DNA of 64,000 bases from Hemiscyllium ocellatum (lineage: Eukaryota): NCBI RefSeq assembly GCF_020745735.1, contig NC_083407.1, forward strand, positions 24,419,857 to 24,483,856. The letters run 5' to 3'. This document shows positions 4,361 through 59,234 of this stretch, piece by piece; position 1 is the stretch's first letter; every line of letters starts with the position of its first letter. Under the pieces are notes generated by a model that worked only from the letters and a program-made list of their open reading frames with translations, searched no databases and was not told the DNA's origin. Position numbers and translations under genes: made by a program.

Positions 4361-4564
4361 GACTGCAGATGCTAGAAACCAGATTCGGGATTAGTGGTGC
4401 TGGAAGAGCATAACAGTTCAGGCAGCATCCAAGGAGCAGCGAAATCGACGTTTCGGGCAAAAGCTCTTCATCAGGATGAAGGACTTTTGCCCGAAACGTC
4501 GATTTCGCTGCTCCTTGGATGCTGCCTGAACTGCTGTGCTCTTCCAGCACCACTAATCCAGAAT
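4361..4564. mobile_element. Palindromic PLE-terminus element (~90-bp arms) with hammerhead-derived centre
   Basis: Near-perfect inverted repeat centred ~4473; gacgtttcgggcaaaagctcttcatcag / gatgaaggacttttgcccgaaacgtc. Confidence 0.85.
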
Positions 4565-4737
4565 GTGTTTGTACGGTCATCCTAAATAACACTACTTGAC
4601 CCCAAAAATCAGTCATTGGCTTTTTAAAAAATGTTGTAGCCTTACTGGAAGCAAGTTTATTCCAATTTAGCCAGACTATTTAAAACAAACTGCAGTATTT
4701 AGATTGTGAAATGAATGGTGATGATTCTCCTTTACAG

Positions 4738-4842: not shown

Positions 4843-6702
4843 GTAAGTATGAATCTTTGAATGAACATTGACGTTTTTGGAAGTCCTGAGTGTATCATGT
4901 GGACAGCTCATAAAATGGCATCAGCTATTTTTAATATAGGTTGTTCTGTCATAACACGCATTTCATAAAAGCGAATTTGCTGTAACGCAATTGATAAATT
5001 GGAGATGCTGTTTCTACAGTGCAAACTTTTAAAATATGCTGTTTTAAGTGTTGTTACTAAAGTGTGATTTTTATAGAACATAGGGTTGCACAAGAACGAT
5101 ATAAAAGAACTGACAGTAGATCCACTAGAGAGCTGAAAAAAATACCAACTGAACTTAAAGCCATGCATTTATAATGTTATCTGCTCACAACAACAAGTTG
5201 CGTAAGTACTCAAATTCTAGAATATCCAAGATCAAAAGAAATCAGAGCAGGTGGAGGCAATATGGGCATTGCACCTACTGCAACATGCTGTCCAATCAAT
5301 CAAAGCTAACCTTGGCTTTCAGCTCCATTTTCTGCCCACTCCCCATATCCTTTGTTCCTCCGGCAGACCAAAAAAACTGTCTATCCCAGTCATAAATGTA
5401 TTCAAAAATGGAGCCTTCACAACCATTTGGGGCAGAGAATTCCAAAGTTTCAGAAAGCTTTGTGTGAATAACTATCTCCTCATTTCATCCTCAGCCCATT
5501 ATCCCAAGGAAGTGTCCTCTATTTTGGTTTCCCTCACCAACGAAAACAATCTCTCATCATCCACCTTATTAAGCCCTTCAGAACCTTGAACATTCCAATA
5601 TGATGGCCTCCCTCTTCTAAATGATCCTGAGAATATTGACCCTATTTGCTTAAGCTCTCATCGTAGGACAATCCTTTCACACCAGGTACTAATTTAGTGA
5701 AACGTCATTGTACTGCCTCCAGTGCAAGTACATCTTTTCTTAAATGCGGATACCAGAATTTCATAGGGATTAGTAGTGAGATTTAAATAAAATGCATGTC
5801 ATGTTAAGACAGAAGTTTGTCATAAGAGTTTGTTGTTTTACTTTAGCCTGTGTCACAATAAATTAGATCAAACTAATAACACATGTTGATGTATTTTGCC
5901 CTTAGGCTGGTAAATGAATCATGTGTCCTTCAACACTATTAACTTCAAAAATTTATCCTCACTGATATTAAAATTGACTATTATCAGATTAGATGTAAGA
6001 ATAAATTAAGTAGATCATCATTCAAAACTGTTGTATTTGCAATGTAACAAGATATAAATGTCACTTCCATTAGCTTTAACAGCATGCTAGTTTCTATTGG
6101 TTTCTCTGAGTCATGTATGATTGCTTCTGCAATTTTGAGAAACTTCACAAAAGCAGATAGTAAGGTAGCACTAAAGTAGACAAATGTATCTGAATGACAA
6201 GATATTGATCCAGAATTTACTGAGTCCATAATTATAAACAGAAGTTCAAGCCTAACAATGGGCTGATCACATTTGGGGGAAAAAAATGTGAAGAAACATT
6301 GCATTAAATGAGGGAAAACTGTGTAAAAATATCATAAATATCTAGCCTGTGAATAAGAAACAAGTGCAGAGGAAGGAACGAAACAAATATTTTTGTAATC
6401 AGTTAAGTTTTATATTTTAGCCTGTACTGCCATTGCTTAATTCAAACATTTAATCTGAAAATAATTGATATATTGTTTTAAAAATAACTTTTCTCAATTT
6501 CAATTCCAGCATAAAATTATTTATTTAATATGAAATTAATGAAAAGCTATAGGATTGATTCTTAACATCAAAACAGGGTGGGTCAGTGTCACATCAGAAG
6601 TTAAATAACAAAAAGTAGAAAAGGATCCCAAGCCATTGCAATACTTGGAATAATATTGGAGATGAGATGAAAGGTGATTATCAGTGCATTTGTTTTATTA
6701 TA

Positions 6703-6918
6703 TGGAGATGCCGGTGTTGGACTGGGGTGTACAAAGTTTAAAAATCACACAATACCAGGTTATAGTCCAACAGGTTTAATTGGAAACACACTAGCTTTTG
6801 GAGCAACGCTCCTTCATCAGGTGACAATCACCTGATGAAGGAGCGTCACTCCGAAAGCTAGTGTGCTTCCAATTAAACCTGTTGGACTATGACCTGGTAT
6901 TGTGTGATTTTTTATCTC
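6703..6918. mobile_element. Palindromic PLE-terminus element, AGCU-hammerhead family, TSD-flanked
   Basis: ~85-bp inverted arms centred ~6826; 12-bp direct repeat tgttttattata at 6691-6702 and 6919-6930. Confidence 0.85.
6829..6863 (+). ncRNA. Minimal type I hammerhead ribozyme motif (intact core)
   Basis: cac-CTGATGA-a-ggag(cgtca)ctcc-GAAA-gc-TA-gtg: stem I cac/gtg, stem II ggag/ctcc, palindromic AGCT stem III. Confidence 0.7.
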
Positions 6919-25340: not shown

Positions 25341-26464
25341 TCGGTGATTGGTTAGAGTATGGAATGCATTGGAAGTATAGTGGAAGCAGGTTCAATTGAG
25401 ATATTCAAGAGACTGCTAATGATTATTGGGATAGAAAAAAGTGTACACGGGTATGTGGAGAAAGCAAAAGATTGGCACTAAGAAATGAAACTTGTTTGGA
25501 GAGCTAGTGCAGGTATGATGGGCCATATGGCCTCCTCCTGCACAGAAACTAGGCAACCTGCTGTCTGTTGCCTCACCACTGCTTGACTAGCATTAGATCT
25601 GGTCCTTGTCTTAAGGAGTCAATGGCATATATCACATTCTTTCCAGCTGTCTGACCAGACAAGTTTCTGCCTATTGTCTGAAATAAAATAGAGCTACTAA
25701 AGGACACATTCTTCTTGATATAATCTTTATCTTGCATTCAATGAGAAAACCAACACGTGTATTTCGTGAGAGCAGAATACTGATTCGTTGGCAAATCATC
25801 TCTGATTGGTAGAGGTGTTGCCACGGAGAATGCATCCATTCATGAGGACTTGCAGTTAAATCTAGCAGTTAATTGTTAATTATCATAAATGAGTGCATTC
25901 TCCATAGCAATGTCTCTACATATCAGTCTACCTGCCAATTAATCAGCACTTTCCTCTCTTTTGTTTCATTCACTAGTGGGACATGCCAGCATTTATTACC
26001 TCCTTGTCCTGTTGTAGTCTATATGCTACAGGTTAATCCACATGCCATTAGAGAGAGAATTACAGAATTATGACCCAGTGACAGTGAAAGAACAGCAATA
26101 TATTTCCAAGTAAGAACAGTGAGTGGCTAGGAGAGGCACTTGCTGGTTGTAGTCTCCCCATGTATCTGCTGGCTTTGTCCTTCTAGATGGATCTGGTCAT
26201 GGGTTCAGAAGGTGTTCTATAATGATCATTGTTGAATTTTTGTAGTGTTTACTGTAGAGAGTACACACAACAGTCTAACTGTCGATCTTCATCTTGGATT
26301 GGCATTCATCAGGACAATTTTGTAAGAATGCAAGATGAAAAGTTTGACAAATATCTTATTTCAGGAATACTCAATTTCTGAGTCATCAAACAACTGTTTG
26401 AGATGATATATCTTGTTGGCAGGAAAACAACATTTGATAAATTTGTACACTTGATTTATTGCAG

Positions 26465-37210: not shown

Positions 37211-38998
37211 GTGAAATGTACCTGTCTCAGTTTGGGAGGAAATCATTTTTGCTGAATCTCAACAGTTAAACCTTTATCTTAAGATGAGACTCAAGTGAGG
37301 GAAGTTAATCTGAAAAATACATCGATTTCAACCTGTTTAATGTTGTTTGAAGATGGAAAATAATTTCTTATGCATAGGATGGTTTCTTAATTGTAATTAA
37401 TTTCAGCCCATTTATCATAAGAATTTGGTTTTAATCACTTACTTCCAACTTAAGAACAACATTTTCTGATTCTATGAAAATTTATATAACTAAAATTTAC
37501 AAAACAATATCTCAGTATTATTGATTCTAAAAATGCTTAGCTTGCGAGGGCTGTGGTGCTTAACTTCCATTAGTTTTTGGATTATGATGTGCTTCTAGAT
37601 CGTTTAAATTCCAATTGAGTGTGGATTATCAGCACATTTTACCAAATTTACCTACATTGCACTTTTGTTACCTGACAATGTGTAAAAAATATGCAAGTGT
37701 ACAGTTTTTTTGGGTGTGGATTTCTTACCACGAAATCTGTAAAAGTCATTGTCTTTAAAAAAGCCCTTTTAAATTGTTTTAGCCATTTTTAGCCTAACAT
37801 ACTTAATTAAGGCTGTTTTTGTTTAAATGGATTCTTGACAGCAAAATGTCTTGAGTAGAGCGAAATTAAATATAATATCCTTTATTGTCATGTGTACTCT
37901 GTACAGAAGTACTGGAGTACAGTGAAAAAATTTTACTTATTGGTACTGGCACCAGTACCTAGGTACAAATCTAGGATACAAAAGATCAATGAAAAGTAGT
38001 ATCATTACTTAGTGTCTTAAAAAATAAGTTAGAGGTAAGATTGTTATAACAAACTTGATGGATTGACATTACAGTCTGGTAAAGTATTTCAGATCGACAT
38101 TACATTGCAGCAGCACATTGAACACATGGTCTGACTCCCCCTTGCAAAGCCCCAACCGAATAACTGTCCCGCTCTATTCCAAGCATCCAGTCCGTTTCAA
38201 ACTGGCACTCAGCTGCACCAAGGTAAGTTGCGCTGCTCCAAGACTCGCTTTTCCTCTCACGAATCTCCACTACTTGTTTCAGCTTGCACAGTTCTAGGGC
38301 TCATACCTATTGTGCTGCACCAACATTCGCTTCCCCTCTCTGCTCCAGGACCCGTTTCCCCTCACTGCTCCGGGACTTGAGGCAGACAATGCACCTTATT
38401 AACTTCCTCAAAGTTCTGTAAATGCAGTTTTTCCAACTGCTGTGCCATTTGTGTTTAGTTGTCAACATCCCCATTTGCTTTGCTGCATAACTTTTCCACA
38501 AAGCATCCTGTTCTCTTTCTGACAATATTCCATCAGCAATCATTAAAGACCAGTTTTTAACTTTTTAGCCTTTAAAAAATTATAGCTATTTTTCTTTCCT
38601 GCCCTTTGCTAACAGTTCTGTAGTAGCACTTATATCAGAATGTTGTAGATTCAAGTCCCAGTCTGGAGATAGTAGCACAAAATCCAGCTGGAAGTACCAT
38701 GTGAGTACCAGTGACAGGCACCATCTATTGGATGGAATATTATATGCAGCCTCACCTGCTCGATTGGATGGACATGAAAATCGCATTGTATAATTTCAGG
38801 AAATGTTATCTTTGGTGTCATGGGTAGTACATATCCATCAAACAGTATAACTGAAATATATTATCTGCTATGGTATTATTCCTGCCCTTAATTACTTCAT
38901 AGTCAATCCTTTGAAATGTCACTGTAATGAAGGGAAGTATTGCTTGTACTGTTCCTCCAGGGTGAATGCTAATCATCCATTGTTTCTTAGGATAATAG

Positions 38999-39211
38999 CT
39001 GAAAATGTGTTGTTGGAAAGGCGCAGCAGGTCAGGCAGCATCCAAGGAGCAGGAGAATCGACGTTTCGGGCATGAGCCCTTCTTCAGATTCCTGAAGAAG
39101 GGCTCATGCCCGAAACGTCGATTCTCCTGTTCCTTGGATGCTGCCTGACCTGCTGCGCTTTTCCAGCAACACATTTTCAGCTCTGATCTCCAGCATCTGC
39201 AGACCTCACTT
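38999..39211. mobile_element. Young palindromic PLE-terminus element with back-to-back hammerhead cores, TSD-flanked
   Basis: ~90-bp near-perfect inverted arms centred ~39089; 16-bp direct repeat tttcttaggataatag at 38983-38998 and 39212-39227. Confidence 0.92.
39086..39125 (+). ncRNA. Hammerhead ribozyme motif (intact core, one U-U mismatch in stem I); mirror copy on the minus strand ~39055-39091
   Basis: agattc-CTGAAGA-a-gggc(tcat)gccc-GAAA-cg-TC-gattct. Confidence 0.65.
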
Positions 39212-56060: not shown

Positions 56061-56165
56061 TACAAGTACCGAGAATCAGTTGCAAAACTAAGAAACAACT
56101 TCAAGTATACGGCCGATACTCCACACATCCGGCACGCTAGGGCGGCAACAGCAATGTTAGATGAG
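56061..56165 (+). CDS. NEB: NEB exon 38 (105 nt)
   Basis: ttgcag|YKYRESVAKLRNNFKYTADTPHIRHARAATAMLDE|gtttgt. Confidence 0.94.
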
Positions 56166-57872
56166 GTTTGTGCAATTGGGATAGAGTTAATAAGACAATA
56201 TTACAAATATCCAACCTATGTTGGAGCCTTCAAGCCCTTGCGACCCAACCTTGAAAGCCCAGGCAATTCAGTCCTGTTCACATTGCATCTCGTACTTGTT
56301 AATGGCTCCCATTTTGTATTTAGTGACTCTGAAGAGTTTGAAAGTACTGCTTTTAGCACTGTTGCCTGAATAGTGGACGAATCCTTAGTCAGAGCACTAA
56401 GATGTGCTTGTATCAGTAACTGAATATAGGGACATGGGTTTCAACTTTATACACTGCTCTCAAGGCTCTCTGGTGCAAACCTTCCAACGTAAAACCTGGA
56501 CATTCTTGATCTATATTTTTGTCTCAAAATATATAAAAATACTAAATCTGTTAATAACATCATCTCTTTTTGAATTTGCTTTCAAGGAAAAAAAATAGAA
56601 AATATAAATATTAGACTGAGTAAATTCTGTGAATGGGTATTAACATTCCTTTAATGTACCATTAGGTTTTCTTATTCGATCTGGTACTTTGTGGCAACTT
56701 GGGATTTTCTTTGATAATGTAGAGCTTGAACTCTTCACTGAACTGTATTGTGTTTAAAAAAAAAAGTCTTTTTAGGATAAAATGACTCAAAATCCAAAGG
56801 ATAAGAGATGACTTTTAGCTTTTACAGAGGCATGTATTACATTATTCCCTTACCACTCATTTTTCTTTGCGATTTTCTTAACTGCTACCTAGAGGAGCCT
56901 AGAAATTATTATAAGGTAAAAACAAAGGTAAGATTTTCCCATTACCACAAGTATAAATAAATCTGCTTCCCTAAAACAGTTGTTCAACTTTTAATTAAAT
57001 CACTTCTTCCAGAATGTTGAAACTGTTCATTTCAAAAACTGAAATGAGTGATGGAATTAAAACCTCTTTGATCTATACTGTGCTTGAGCGAATAATTACG
57101 AACAAAGATAAAATGTATCATAAGGCTGTAGATATCCATGAAGATAATGAAAGTACATATTTTACAACTTATCTGACCAAACATTACCTAAACATTTTTT
57201 GACAGATGCAAAAAAGAATTTTAATATCTATCATTTGCTTTATCTGAGTTACTAGGCAGTTCATTAATTGTTACAATCCTCACTTCCAAGCTGCTTAAGG
57301 CTAAAAGCAACACAAGTAAAATTCAAAAACACTCTAGTCTCAGGCAAAGAGAAAACATGTTGATTATTTTTATGATTAGGATTTCCATCATTACAATTTG
57401 TCAGTTAAAGTAATATCATTTTGATTCTCAATCCTGAATATTGTCAGCATTATATATTTACTTCCATTCTATTTTGAGATACATCTTTGCAGTAACTCCA
57501 ATGAATGCAAGCAAAGTACTAACAAATGCTCACTTTTGTAGGGCCTGTTGCCAAGAATTTCAGGACATGGATGTAGCTCTTGTTAAGCAGCATATTTGTC
57601 ATTCACTCTCTTTACTTGCAAATGACTGGTTGTTGGAAATGGGAACAACATTTTGACTCTGACTTCAGGTGGTCAGAGTCAGATTTTCAGACAAGGCTTA
57701 GAAGATTGAGAAAATCTGACTGCACTGACTTGTCCTAGAGCCAGATATTGAAATATTTCATCCCCATGCAACAGTTAAATCAGTTAATTCCCTCACCTCA
57801 CACTTCCTTTACAAAAACATTAAATCATTGAATAGAATGCATTATTTTAACTACATCTCATATTCTGAGCAG

Positions 57873-57977
57873 AAGTCATACAAAGCTTTCTATGAGAAGC
57901 AGAAGAGCAAGTATACCTTGGTTTTGGATGATCCTAGAAACCTTCTAGCCAAAAGGTCGGGGCGACTAAGTAGCCAG
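57873..57977 (+). CDS. NEB: NEB exon 39 (105 nt), first of the mutually exclusive pair (human exon 143/144 orthologue)
   Basis: gagcag|KSYKAFYEKQKSKYTLVLDDPRNLLAKRSGRLSSQ|gtaatt; resembles the human alternative repeat KKYRADYEQRKDKYHLVVDEPRHLLAK... (recalled, not aligned). Confidence 0.92.
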
Positions 57978-58222
57978 GTAATTCTGTGGAGCTTGCACTA
58001 GAATGCTAGCCATCTACAACATAACCAGCAGTCATCTGCTGGTATGCTTTATGTGGATGTCATCTACCCAAATAAATGTTTTATTGGGTAGGCCTGCTGC
58101 AGCTTATAAGAACCTTTTCACTTGTAGAGTGACTGAGTTCGAGGATGATGAACACTGGTGTCCTTTACTGGCTTAGCTTACGTTCCATCATCCTTTGCAT
58201 GCATGTGCATTTTTATTGACAG

Positions 58223-58327
58223 CAATCATATAAGTCTGAAGCCAAATTCAAATTAAGGCGAGGATGCAATGAACTTCTACGGCCTGATATGCTGACTGCC
58301 ATATACAACTCAATCTTAGGGAGCCAG
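58223..58327 (+). CDS. NEB: NEB exon 40 (105 nt), second of the mutually exclusive pair (human exon 143/144 orthologue)
   Basis: tgacag|QSYKSEAKFKLRRGCNELLRPDMLTAIYNSILGSQ|gtaaaa; shares the distinctive GCNExLRPDMLTAxYNS motif with the human alternative exon (recalled). Confidence 0.92.
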
Positions 58328-58670
58328 GTAAAAGCGCTTGGTGTTGTGCACTATTGTATCTTCTTTATATTTTTTGGATTGTCTTAAACTAAAGCATTGA
58401 ACACTAAGCATTAATCATTTTAAAAGTTCATTTGGAAATAGATTAATCAATATTTTGGTGAATTTCAGTTGCAAACCAAGTTGAGATTAATTTCTAAAAT
58501 GTTCCCTACTAATTCAAGCACAAGTAATTTTGCTGTGTGCATGTGTGGCACTGTCTTCTTTAATAACACTTACTGCATGTTTTTTGATTGATATTCTATT
58601 GATATTGGGCCAGATTTTGATAAAATGTGGCATTTTGTTTCACCTTCTTAGATGCAAAATTTTAGTTTTG

Positions 58671-59050
58671 GGCTTTACAGAGACGTGGGTAGAACAGGGG
58701 CAAGAATGGCTGTTGCAGGTTCCAGGGTTTAAATGTTTTAGTAGGGTCAGACATGGGGGTAAAAGAGGGGGAGGTGTGGCATTACTTGTCAAGGATAGTA
58801 TTACAGCGGTGGAAAGGACGATGGAGGAAGACTTGCCATCTGAGGTAGTTTGGGCTGAGGTTAGAAATAGGAAAGGTGAGGTCACCCTGTTAGGTGTTTT
58901 CTACAGGCCTCCTAATAGTCCGAGAGAAGTAGAGGATAGTATTGCGAGGATGATTCAGGAGAAGAGTGAAAGTAGCAGGGTGGTTGTTATGGGGGACTTT
59001 AACTTCCCAGATATTGACTGGGAAAGCTATAGCTCGAGGTCGTTAGATGG
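58671..59050 (+). mobile_element. Internal CR1 ORF2 fragment, APE endonuclease domain only
   Basis: TETW...RGGGVALLVK...GVFYRPPNS...VVMGDFNFPDIDW in an uninterrupted frame. Confidence 0.92.
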
Positions 59051-59129
59051 AATACAGCTTTTCAGCAAGATCTGGCCCATTGGGTTGACATTGATTGCTC
59101 TACATTAATTATTTGCTCGCTGTATACAG

Positions 59130-59234
59130 TGGATTTATCGGAAGGACTACGAAAAGGTGAAAGACAAATACACTTCAATTTTTGAGACCCCTGACAATCT
59201 CCGAACTAAGAAAGTGACGAAGTTCATCAGTGAT
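59130..59234 (+). CDS. NEB: NEB exon 41 (105 nt)
   Basis: atacag|WIYRKDYEKVKDKYTSIFETPDNLRTKKVTKFISD|gtaagt. Confidence 0.95.

Follow-up and report, generated by a model that had tools for sequence, protein, structure and literature searches.

A conserved GCAUG element and a strongly folded intron at a predicted nebulin 143/144-type exon pair of the shark Hemiscyllium ocellatum

The window that we analysed is a stretch of 64,000 nucleotides (64 kb) of Hemiscyllium ocellatum contig NC_083407.1, and all positions given below are counted from its first letter. Judged from its sequence, the gene on the + strand is nebulin: about 35 repeat-encoding exons are readable within the window, and an exon neighbouring the pair described here matches the nebulin repeat of Pfam with an E value of 2.8e-15. 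This pair consists of two adjacent exons, A and B, which are both located on the + strand, both 105 nt long and both in phase 0. Exon A (57873-57977), the first of the pair, encodes a canonical nebulin repeat and is of the human exon 143 type. Exon B (58223-58327), the second of the pair, has the acceptor UUGACAG and is of the human exon 144 type. The intron between them, called A-B intron in the following, comprises 245 nt (57978-58222, +) and is of the U2 type (GUAAUU...ACAG). On the upstream side the pair is flanked by a constitutive nebulin exon (56061-56165, +; 105 nt, phase 0) that forms an open frame between AG and GT. On the downstream side a further constitutive nebulin exon follows (59130-59234, +). 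The intron after exon B additionally contains a LINE-type endonuclease fragment in sense orientation (58680-59105, +; Pfam Exo_endo_phos, E 7.5e-11).

Using exon B alone as query against 1.84 billion representative proteins we obtained 24 short reading frames that run through exon B orthologues in unannotated vertebrate contigs, with nothing closer than 71% identity. Another protein from this search, P0005, was an unrelated repetitive protein and was rejected as an orthologue. Searches with the intron and with exon A reading frames provided no cartilaginous-fish counterparts. DNA was compared from nine species-level loci, which were assigned to groups with labels derived from their exon sequences: a mammal-like group (L006, L008, L014 and L016), a bird-like group (L001 and L012) and a ray-finned-fish-like group (L005, L011 and L009). 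The mammal-like and the bird-like loci are referred to together as the six tetrapod-like loci. Exon A is identical in three of the four mammal-like loci, in agreement with the identity of exon 143 between human and mouse (PMC6200726).

The order of preceding exon, exon A, exon B and following exon was reproduced in eight other vertebrate loci. The orthologue of the preceding exon was located upstream of exon A in L001, L008 and L011, and that of the following exon was found after exon B in L011 and in the spliced model P0020. Between the shark and the eight other loci the first exon of the pair shows 57-60% identity, and shark exon B shares 63-71% with the second exon of other vertebrates. Wherever the flank was long enough, the orthologue of exon A was found 449-654 nt before that of exon B. 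Exon A of the fish-like loci has a length of 102 nt rather than 105 nt, such that the fish-like pair measures 102 and 105 nt.

Exon B carries the segment ...GCNE(I/L)LRPD(M/I)L..., and the shark pair agrees in adjacency, reading frame, exon length of about 105 nt, order and flanks with the human exon pair NEB 143/144 (mouse Neb 127/128, super-repeat S21; PMC6200726, PMC7370890). A canonical and highly conserved first exon, a divergent second exon and a short intron in between are likewise shared with the human pair. An earlier note on this DNA had taken the two exons for a mutually exclusive pair, and order, flanks and exon identities in other vertebrates identify them as the nebulin pair of the 143/144 type: on the basis of these comparisons exon A is the orthologue of human exon 143 and exon B the orthologue of human exon 144. 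For human and mouse it is documented that one exon or the other is included, never both (PMC6200726, PMC7370890). By extension from the mammals, the shark exons would be mutually exclusive as well.

The acceptor of exon A (57862-57872) is nearly identical, …UUCUGAGCAG, in the shark, one bird-like locus and two fish-like loci, and it reads …U(C/U)(C/U)GAGCAG in the mammal-like loci. The exon B acceptors all end with a purine-rich (G/A)(A/G)ACAG. Conserved weak acceptors on both exons are as expected for regulated exons.

UGCAUG is the binding element of RBFOX. In the shark two overlapping TGCATG copies, UGCAUGCAUG, are found just upstream of exon B (58196-58205, +), which places GCAUG at -26 and -22 from the exon B acceptor. 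The earlier note had pointed to this overlap, which is present as TGCATGCATG, and to two further TGCATG downstream, which were found as well (58538 and 58574, spanning 58538-58579, +; 211 and 247 nt after exon B). Over the whole window the number of TGCATG is at chance level (57 versus 54 +/- 7 expected), and the four copies within 600 nt around exon B constitute its densest cluster. Among the 35 shark exons exon B is the only one with a GCATG at most 60 nt upstream of its acceptor, for which the chance is 0.065 per acceptor.

The motif is not limited to the shark. All 10 loci with sequence extending to this region, which belong to four groups, carry a (U)GCAUG upstream of exon B. The six tetrapod-like loci carry an identical UUUGCAUGAACAG with the motif at -10 and a likely branch site, CUUCAC, at about -22. 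In the three fish-like loci GCAUG is located at -48 to -53 and is followed by a UG-rich tract. For about 14 further fish-like reading frames the upstream peptides (e.g. ...WHAVCVC..., ...MACCVCV... and ...CMLCVC...) are compatible with an arrangement of GCAUG plus UG-rich tract, the third codon bases not being readable from peptides. In two of the fish-like loci (L005 398-846 and L011 3702-4204) two more GCAUG follow exon A at a distance of up to about 100 nt. Taking shark, tetrapod-like and fish-like loci as three independent lineages with a chance of 0.065 each provides a joint chance of about 3e-4. These comparisons support that the GCAUG at the exon B acceptor has been conserved and does not occur there by chance, and it is probably a working RBFOX-type site.

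Folding of the A-B intron resulted in a chain of stem-loops, in which all stable stems are local and confined to this intron. Every hairpin arm that had been quoted in the earlier note was found in place (all on the + strand). Stem-loop 1 (58011-58059), with a probability of its arms to be unpaired of 0.02-0.10, is closed by an outer stem of 8 bp (58011-58018 with 58052-58059). This stem encloses hairpin i, in which CATAACCAGCAG (58020-58031) pairs with CTGCTGGTATG (58036-58046) over 11 bp with one bulged A. Stem-loop 2, i.e. hairpin ii (58064-58091), is formed by CTACCCAAATAAA and TTTATTGGGTAG and comprises 11-12 bp that are all Watson-Crick. A small fourth hairpin of 4 + 6 bp (58110-58140), absent from the earlier note, was obtained in the MFE as well as in the centroid structure. 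Stem-loop 3, i.e. hairpin iii (58141-58195), consists of 13 bp that close a 28-nt loop, with a probability of its arms to be unpaired of 0.01-0.08. Its arms, AGGATGATGAAC (58142-58153) with GTTCCATCATCCT (58182-58194), enclose the sequence GCTTAC (58176-58181), and the pyrimidine tract provides with its first half the 3' arm. When both exons were included as context, the hairpin arms stayed paired in the ensemble (probability to be unpaired 0.01-0.15). In addition the two ends of the intron can pair (57984-57990 with 58216-58222, possibly 6 bp).

A yUnAy scan of the loop of stem-loop 3 yielded two putative branch points (58164-58181, +), UUUAC with the A at 58167 (-55) and CUUAC with the A at 58180 (-42). 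With the candidates at these positions the shark GCAUGs would be located between the branch region and the AG. The idea that the fold hides the branch point is plausible on this predicted structure, in which both candidates are looped and half of the pyrimidine tract is tied up.

The folding of the intron clearly exceeded that of shuffled sequences: a minimum free energy of -78.9 kcal/mol corresponded to a z-score of -3.53, with 0 of 200 shuffles being as good, and repeat runs on the 245 nt gave -3.96 and -3.99, so that z ranges from -3.5 to -4.0. Taken singly, hairpins i, ii and iii had z-scores of -4.7, -2.8 and -3.4. The remark of the earlier note that a comparable stem density was not noticed in the other short introns holds, since none of these 8 introns folds as well (z -1.4 to +1.3). 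Within the 64 kb as a whole, 7 of 261 non-overlapping segments of 245 nt (2.7%) fold as low, and the four most extreme ones fold far lower (z -8 to -29), namely those at about 38956-39200, 4411-4655, 6616-6860 and 25726-25970 with z-scores of -29, -16, -8.6 and -8.0, respectively. A rough background count gave about 3.5 hairpins per kb with an energy of -11 kcal/mol or better, and three or more of them in 2.8% of the 245-nt segments, where the counter missed hairpin 3 due to its structured loop.

Such a fold could also have arisen at the DNA level. According to this explanation GCAUG alone is functional and the hairpins are neutral near-perfect DNA palindromes, originating from chance or from template-switch or inverted-duplication mutations. 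We consider this a distinct possibility, though one short of an even chance. None of the 35 base pairs in the three stems of the earlier note is a G-U pair, all of them being Watson-Crick, and the antisense strand of the intron folds equally well (z -4.7); stems of this kind together with equal antisense folding are what DNA-level palindromes would give. The 2.7% of local segments that fold as low point in the same direction. Against a neutral origin stands that among the nine short introns only this one has a z-score below -1.4, and further arguments on both sides come from the orthologous introns.

The A-B intron was over-folded in six of six tetrapod-like loci (z -3.0 to -7.6), with flanking-intron controls of the same length ranging from -1.4 to +1.4. 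That over-folding affects the very same intron in the shark as in the tetrapod-like loci, whose flanking introns are free of it, has a chance of about 3% as a coincidence and argues against neutral palindromes. The tetrapod-like introns are moreover equally strand-symmetric in their folding, so that strand symmetry does not discriminate between the explanations. In favour of neutral palindromes, two fish-like introns had no excess folding (z -0.5 and -1.6), and homology of the shark intron to other vertebrate introns was not detected: an nhmmer profile of the six tetrapod-like introns found no match in the shark intron when run against the window, and global alignments of the shark intron with the others reached a z-score of at most 2. 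With 245 nt the shark intron is considerably shorter than the tetrapod-like introns of 611-654 nt, and alignable sequence is limited to the GCAUG at the acceptor. Given the coincidence of about 3%, we consider it about as likely as not that the fold of the shark intron matters.

Some positional likenesses were seen between the shark and the four mammal-like loci. GGAUGUCAU is found at +78 from the donor in the shark (58055-58063) and at +77 to +82 in the mammal-like loci, and AUUGGG is found at +106 (58083-58088) and at +102 to +107, respectively. The two sequences are separated by a hairpin in the shark as well as in the mammal-like loci; homology of these parts is unsupported by the alignment tests.

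Application of RNAalifold to the six tetrapod-like introns revealed conserved local hairpins as well as a long-range helix of 27 bp that spans about 370 nt (alignment columns 198-226 with 569-598). This helix is 90.5% paired across the six loci and contains 6 compensatory pairs. When the partners were slid by +/-2 columns as a control, they still paired at 64-68%, owing to the UG/CA-like character of the arms, such that the support for the helix is moderate and does not amount to proof. A description of it was not found in the papers searched. The six loci also contain strongly conserved intronic blocks. At their 3' splice site a mini-hairpin is present in 6 of 6 cases, in which UUCA of the likely branch site pairs with UGAA of GCAUGAA. 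It parallels stem-loop 3 of the shark in that both involve signals of the exon B acceptor.

The explanation that accounts best for these data, to which we assign a probability of about 0.5, is that the A-B intron serves to regulate an ancient either/or exon pair of nebulin, with GCAUG as core and the hairpins as auxiliary part. It builds on the anatomy of the intron, its excess folding, the conservation of the motif and the excess folding in the tetrapod-like loci, all of which were observed here; the binding of RBFOX, the direction in which it acts, a role for the stems and the exclusivity in the shark enter as predictions. The core part of the switch would be the GCAUG element or elements between the branch-point region and the AG of exon B. 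RBFOX bound at GCAUG would compete with U2AF and U2 snRNP at the 3' splice site of exon B. Exon B would then be silenced and exon A be joined to the following constitutive exon. Without RBFOX splicing would use the acceptor of exon B and skip over the weak one of exon A (UUCUGAGCAG). The hairpins would provide an auxiliary layer: stem-loop 3 may keep the acceptor region of exon B weak, with the branch candidates looped and half of the pyrimidine tract in the stem, and would set GCAUG at the foot of its stem, and the remaining fold may give the intron a defined shape. Exclusivity cannot be attributed to the stems alone, since a blocked exon B acceptor would affect splicing from the preceding exon as much as splicing from exon A.

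The direction of the predicted switch follows from the position rule for RBFOX, by which binding upstream of an exon leads to skipping and binding downstream to inclusion (PMC5840707). Applied to the GCAUG upstream of exon B, the rule predicts silencing of this exon. This is opposite to the earlier note, which had RBFOX select the second exon; the sole conserved motif lies upstream of exon B, for which repression is predicted (PMC5840707). The two downstream TGCATGs, by which activation of exon B would be predicted, have no counterparts in the orthologous loci. RBFOX1 increases during muscle differentiation (PMC5840707), which would fit the predicted silencing of exon B. This developmental argument is a weak one, given that a literature review gives the developmental order of exons 143 and 144 the opposite way (PMC11525221). 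Among the splicing events that are listed as jointly regulated by MBNL1 and RBFOX1 is an unspecified one in NEB (PMC4161394), and our literature search found no paper that ties RBFOX to the NEB 143/144 pair.

A more far-reaching form of the GCAUG-centred explanation is an ancient two-part switch, dating back at least to the ancestor of jawed vertebrates, in which the RBFOX site and a fold that was selected despite complete turnover of its sequence jointly enforce exclusivity. The fold would then take different forms: in the shark it would consist of local hairpins, in the tetrapod-like loci of such hairpins together with a long-range helix. We regard this form as doubtful. If true, it would provide the first mechanism for the exclusivity of NEB 143/144 and an example of structure that is conserved without sequence conservation in a vertebrate intron.

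Exclusivity could alternatively be steric. The earlier note proposed that folding brings the donor of exon A too near to the branch point of exon B, with RBFOX selecting exon B, for which a stable chain of hairpins and the presence of UGCAUG on both sides of exon B speak. Steric exclusivity requires a donor-to-branch distance below a limit of roughly 50-60 nt. The linear distance is about 200 nt in the shark (about 190-203 nt to the branch candidates). In the tetrapod-like loci, for which the same exclusivity is documented, it amounts to about 590 nt; the introns elsewhere measure 449-654 nt. Nor does the predicted fold shorten the path in comparison with shuffles: 31 steps lead from the 5' splice site to GCAUG, compared to 24 +/- 11 steps in shuffles, and the path is likewise unremarkable in 8 other loci. 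The claim of a shortened donor-to-branch distance was thus not borne out and exclusivity by distance is unsupported. Since, moreover, the conserved motif upstream of exon B predicts repression (PMC5840707) and the downstream motifs are not conserved, we consider the steric model unlikely. Two other general routes to exclusivity were rejected. Both exons have 105 nt, i.e. a multiple of three, so that reading frame and NMD cannot enforce the choice. An incompatibility of U2- and U12-type splice sites does not apply to the donors GUAAUU and GUAAAA and the AG acceptors, which are all U2-type.

Still less probable is a competition of docking and selector sequences of the Dscam, 14-3-3zeta or ATE1 type, in which an element of the intron pairs alternately beside each exon. 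The conserved long-range pairing within the tetrapod-like intron would be in line with such a scheme. In the shark all stable stems are local and lie in one intron, and exact or near-exact complementarity between the intron and its flanking introns was not above chance. In particular, the best reverse-strand matches of the intron comprised 11-18 nt with E values of at least 0.5, none of them in neighbouring introns. The extended duplexes that duplexfold predicted between the intron and the flanking introns barely differed from those of shuffles and were disregarded as uninformative. With flanking-intron complementarity at chance level the docking-and-selector scheme is left without support.

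Least credible of all is that the hairpins have nothing to do with splice choice and represent a remnant of a mobile element or an intronic small RNA (miRNA or snoRNA): palindromic retroelement insertions do occur elsewhere in the window, but no second copy of any part of the A-B intron is found within the 64 kb, an Rfam scan of 57700-58700 gave no family match in the intron, stems of 11-13 bp do not reach the length of a miRNA precursor, and a box C-like AUGAUGA is present with no box D downstream of it. The scan returned a sub-threshold match to mir-3660 outside of the intron (58396-58469, +; 20 bits versus a gathering score of 70, E 0.43), which lies in the AT-rich intron after exon B and is most likely due to chance.

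The GCAUG-centred switch can be compared with known systems. Exon 9 of the ATP synthase gamma gene and exon 4 of calcitonin/CGRP are silenced by RBFOX through a UGCAUG in the upstream intron, near the branch point or the 3' splice site. Exon B resembles them by a GCAUG between branch region and AG, by its location in a muscle gene and by the predicted skipping (PMC5840707). It differs from them in that it has an alternative partner immediately upstream, by which one site could toggle two exons. A further comparison is with exons 5A and 5B of egl-15. This muscle-specific mutually exclusive choice in C. elegans is made by repressing an exon with an upstream GCAUG and a GU-rich element: Fox-1/ASD-1 act together with SUP-12 on UGCAUG-GUGUG upstream of exon 5B. 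Similarly, GCAUG is followed by a UG-rich tract in the fish-like loci, and the shark has GCAUGUGCA. The systems differ in gene and phylum, and no sign of a partner of the RBM24/SUP-12 type was seen at the nebulin pair.

Intronic structures that steer exon choice in vertebrates include the competing structures of ATE1 (PMC7797038) and conserved complementary regions (PMC8052449). The nebulin introns are like these systems in having excess pairing, which partly covaries in the tetrapod-like loci and is local in the shark. Unlike in ATE1, no competing pairings were found in the shark. The 'RNA bridges' of RBFOX are a further case in which intronic structure controls exon choice. A bridge or compaction that brings GCAUG nearer to exon A was rejected for the shark intron, since shuffles were equally compact; unlike an RNA bridge, the fold brings the site no nearer to exon A than random folds do.

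Overall, the interpretation in the earlier note is partly supported. A conserved RBFOX-type element and a recurrently structured intron have support, and the selection of the second exon by RBFOX as well as exclusivity through a shortened distance are unsupported. The locus would be a mutually exclusive exon pair that is controlled by RBFOX and has structure in its intron.

NEB is the gene most commonly involved in recessive nemaline myopathy. None of the papers that we found describes the mechanism of the either/or choice between its exons 143 and 144 (PMC11525221, PMC6200726), which makes variants near these exons hard to interpret. The conservation of GCAUG in all vertebrate groups sampled provides a concrete and testable hypothesis of a toggle by RBFOX. 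Excess folding recurs in the shark, the mammal-like and the bird-like group, which suggests a part for RNA structure in the switch, in which case intronic variants that break stems could matter clinically.
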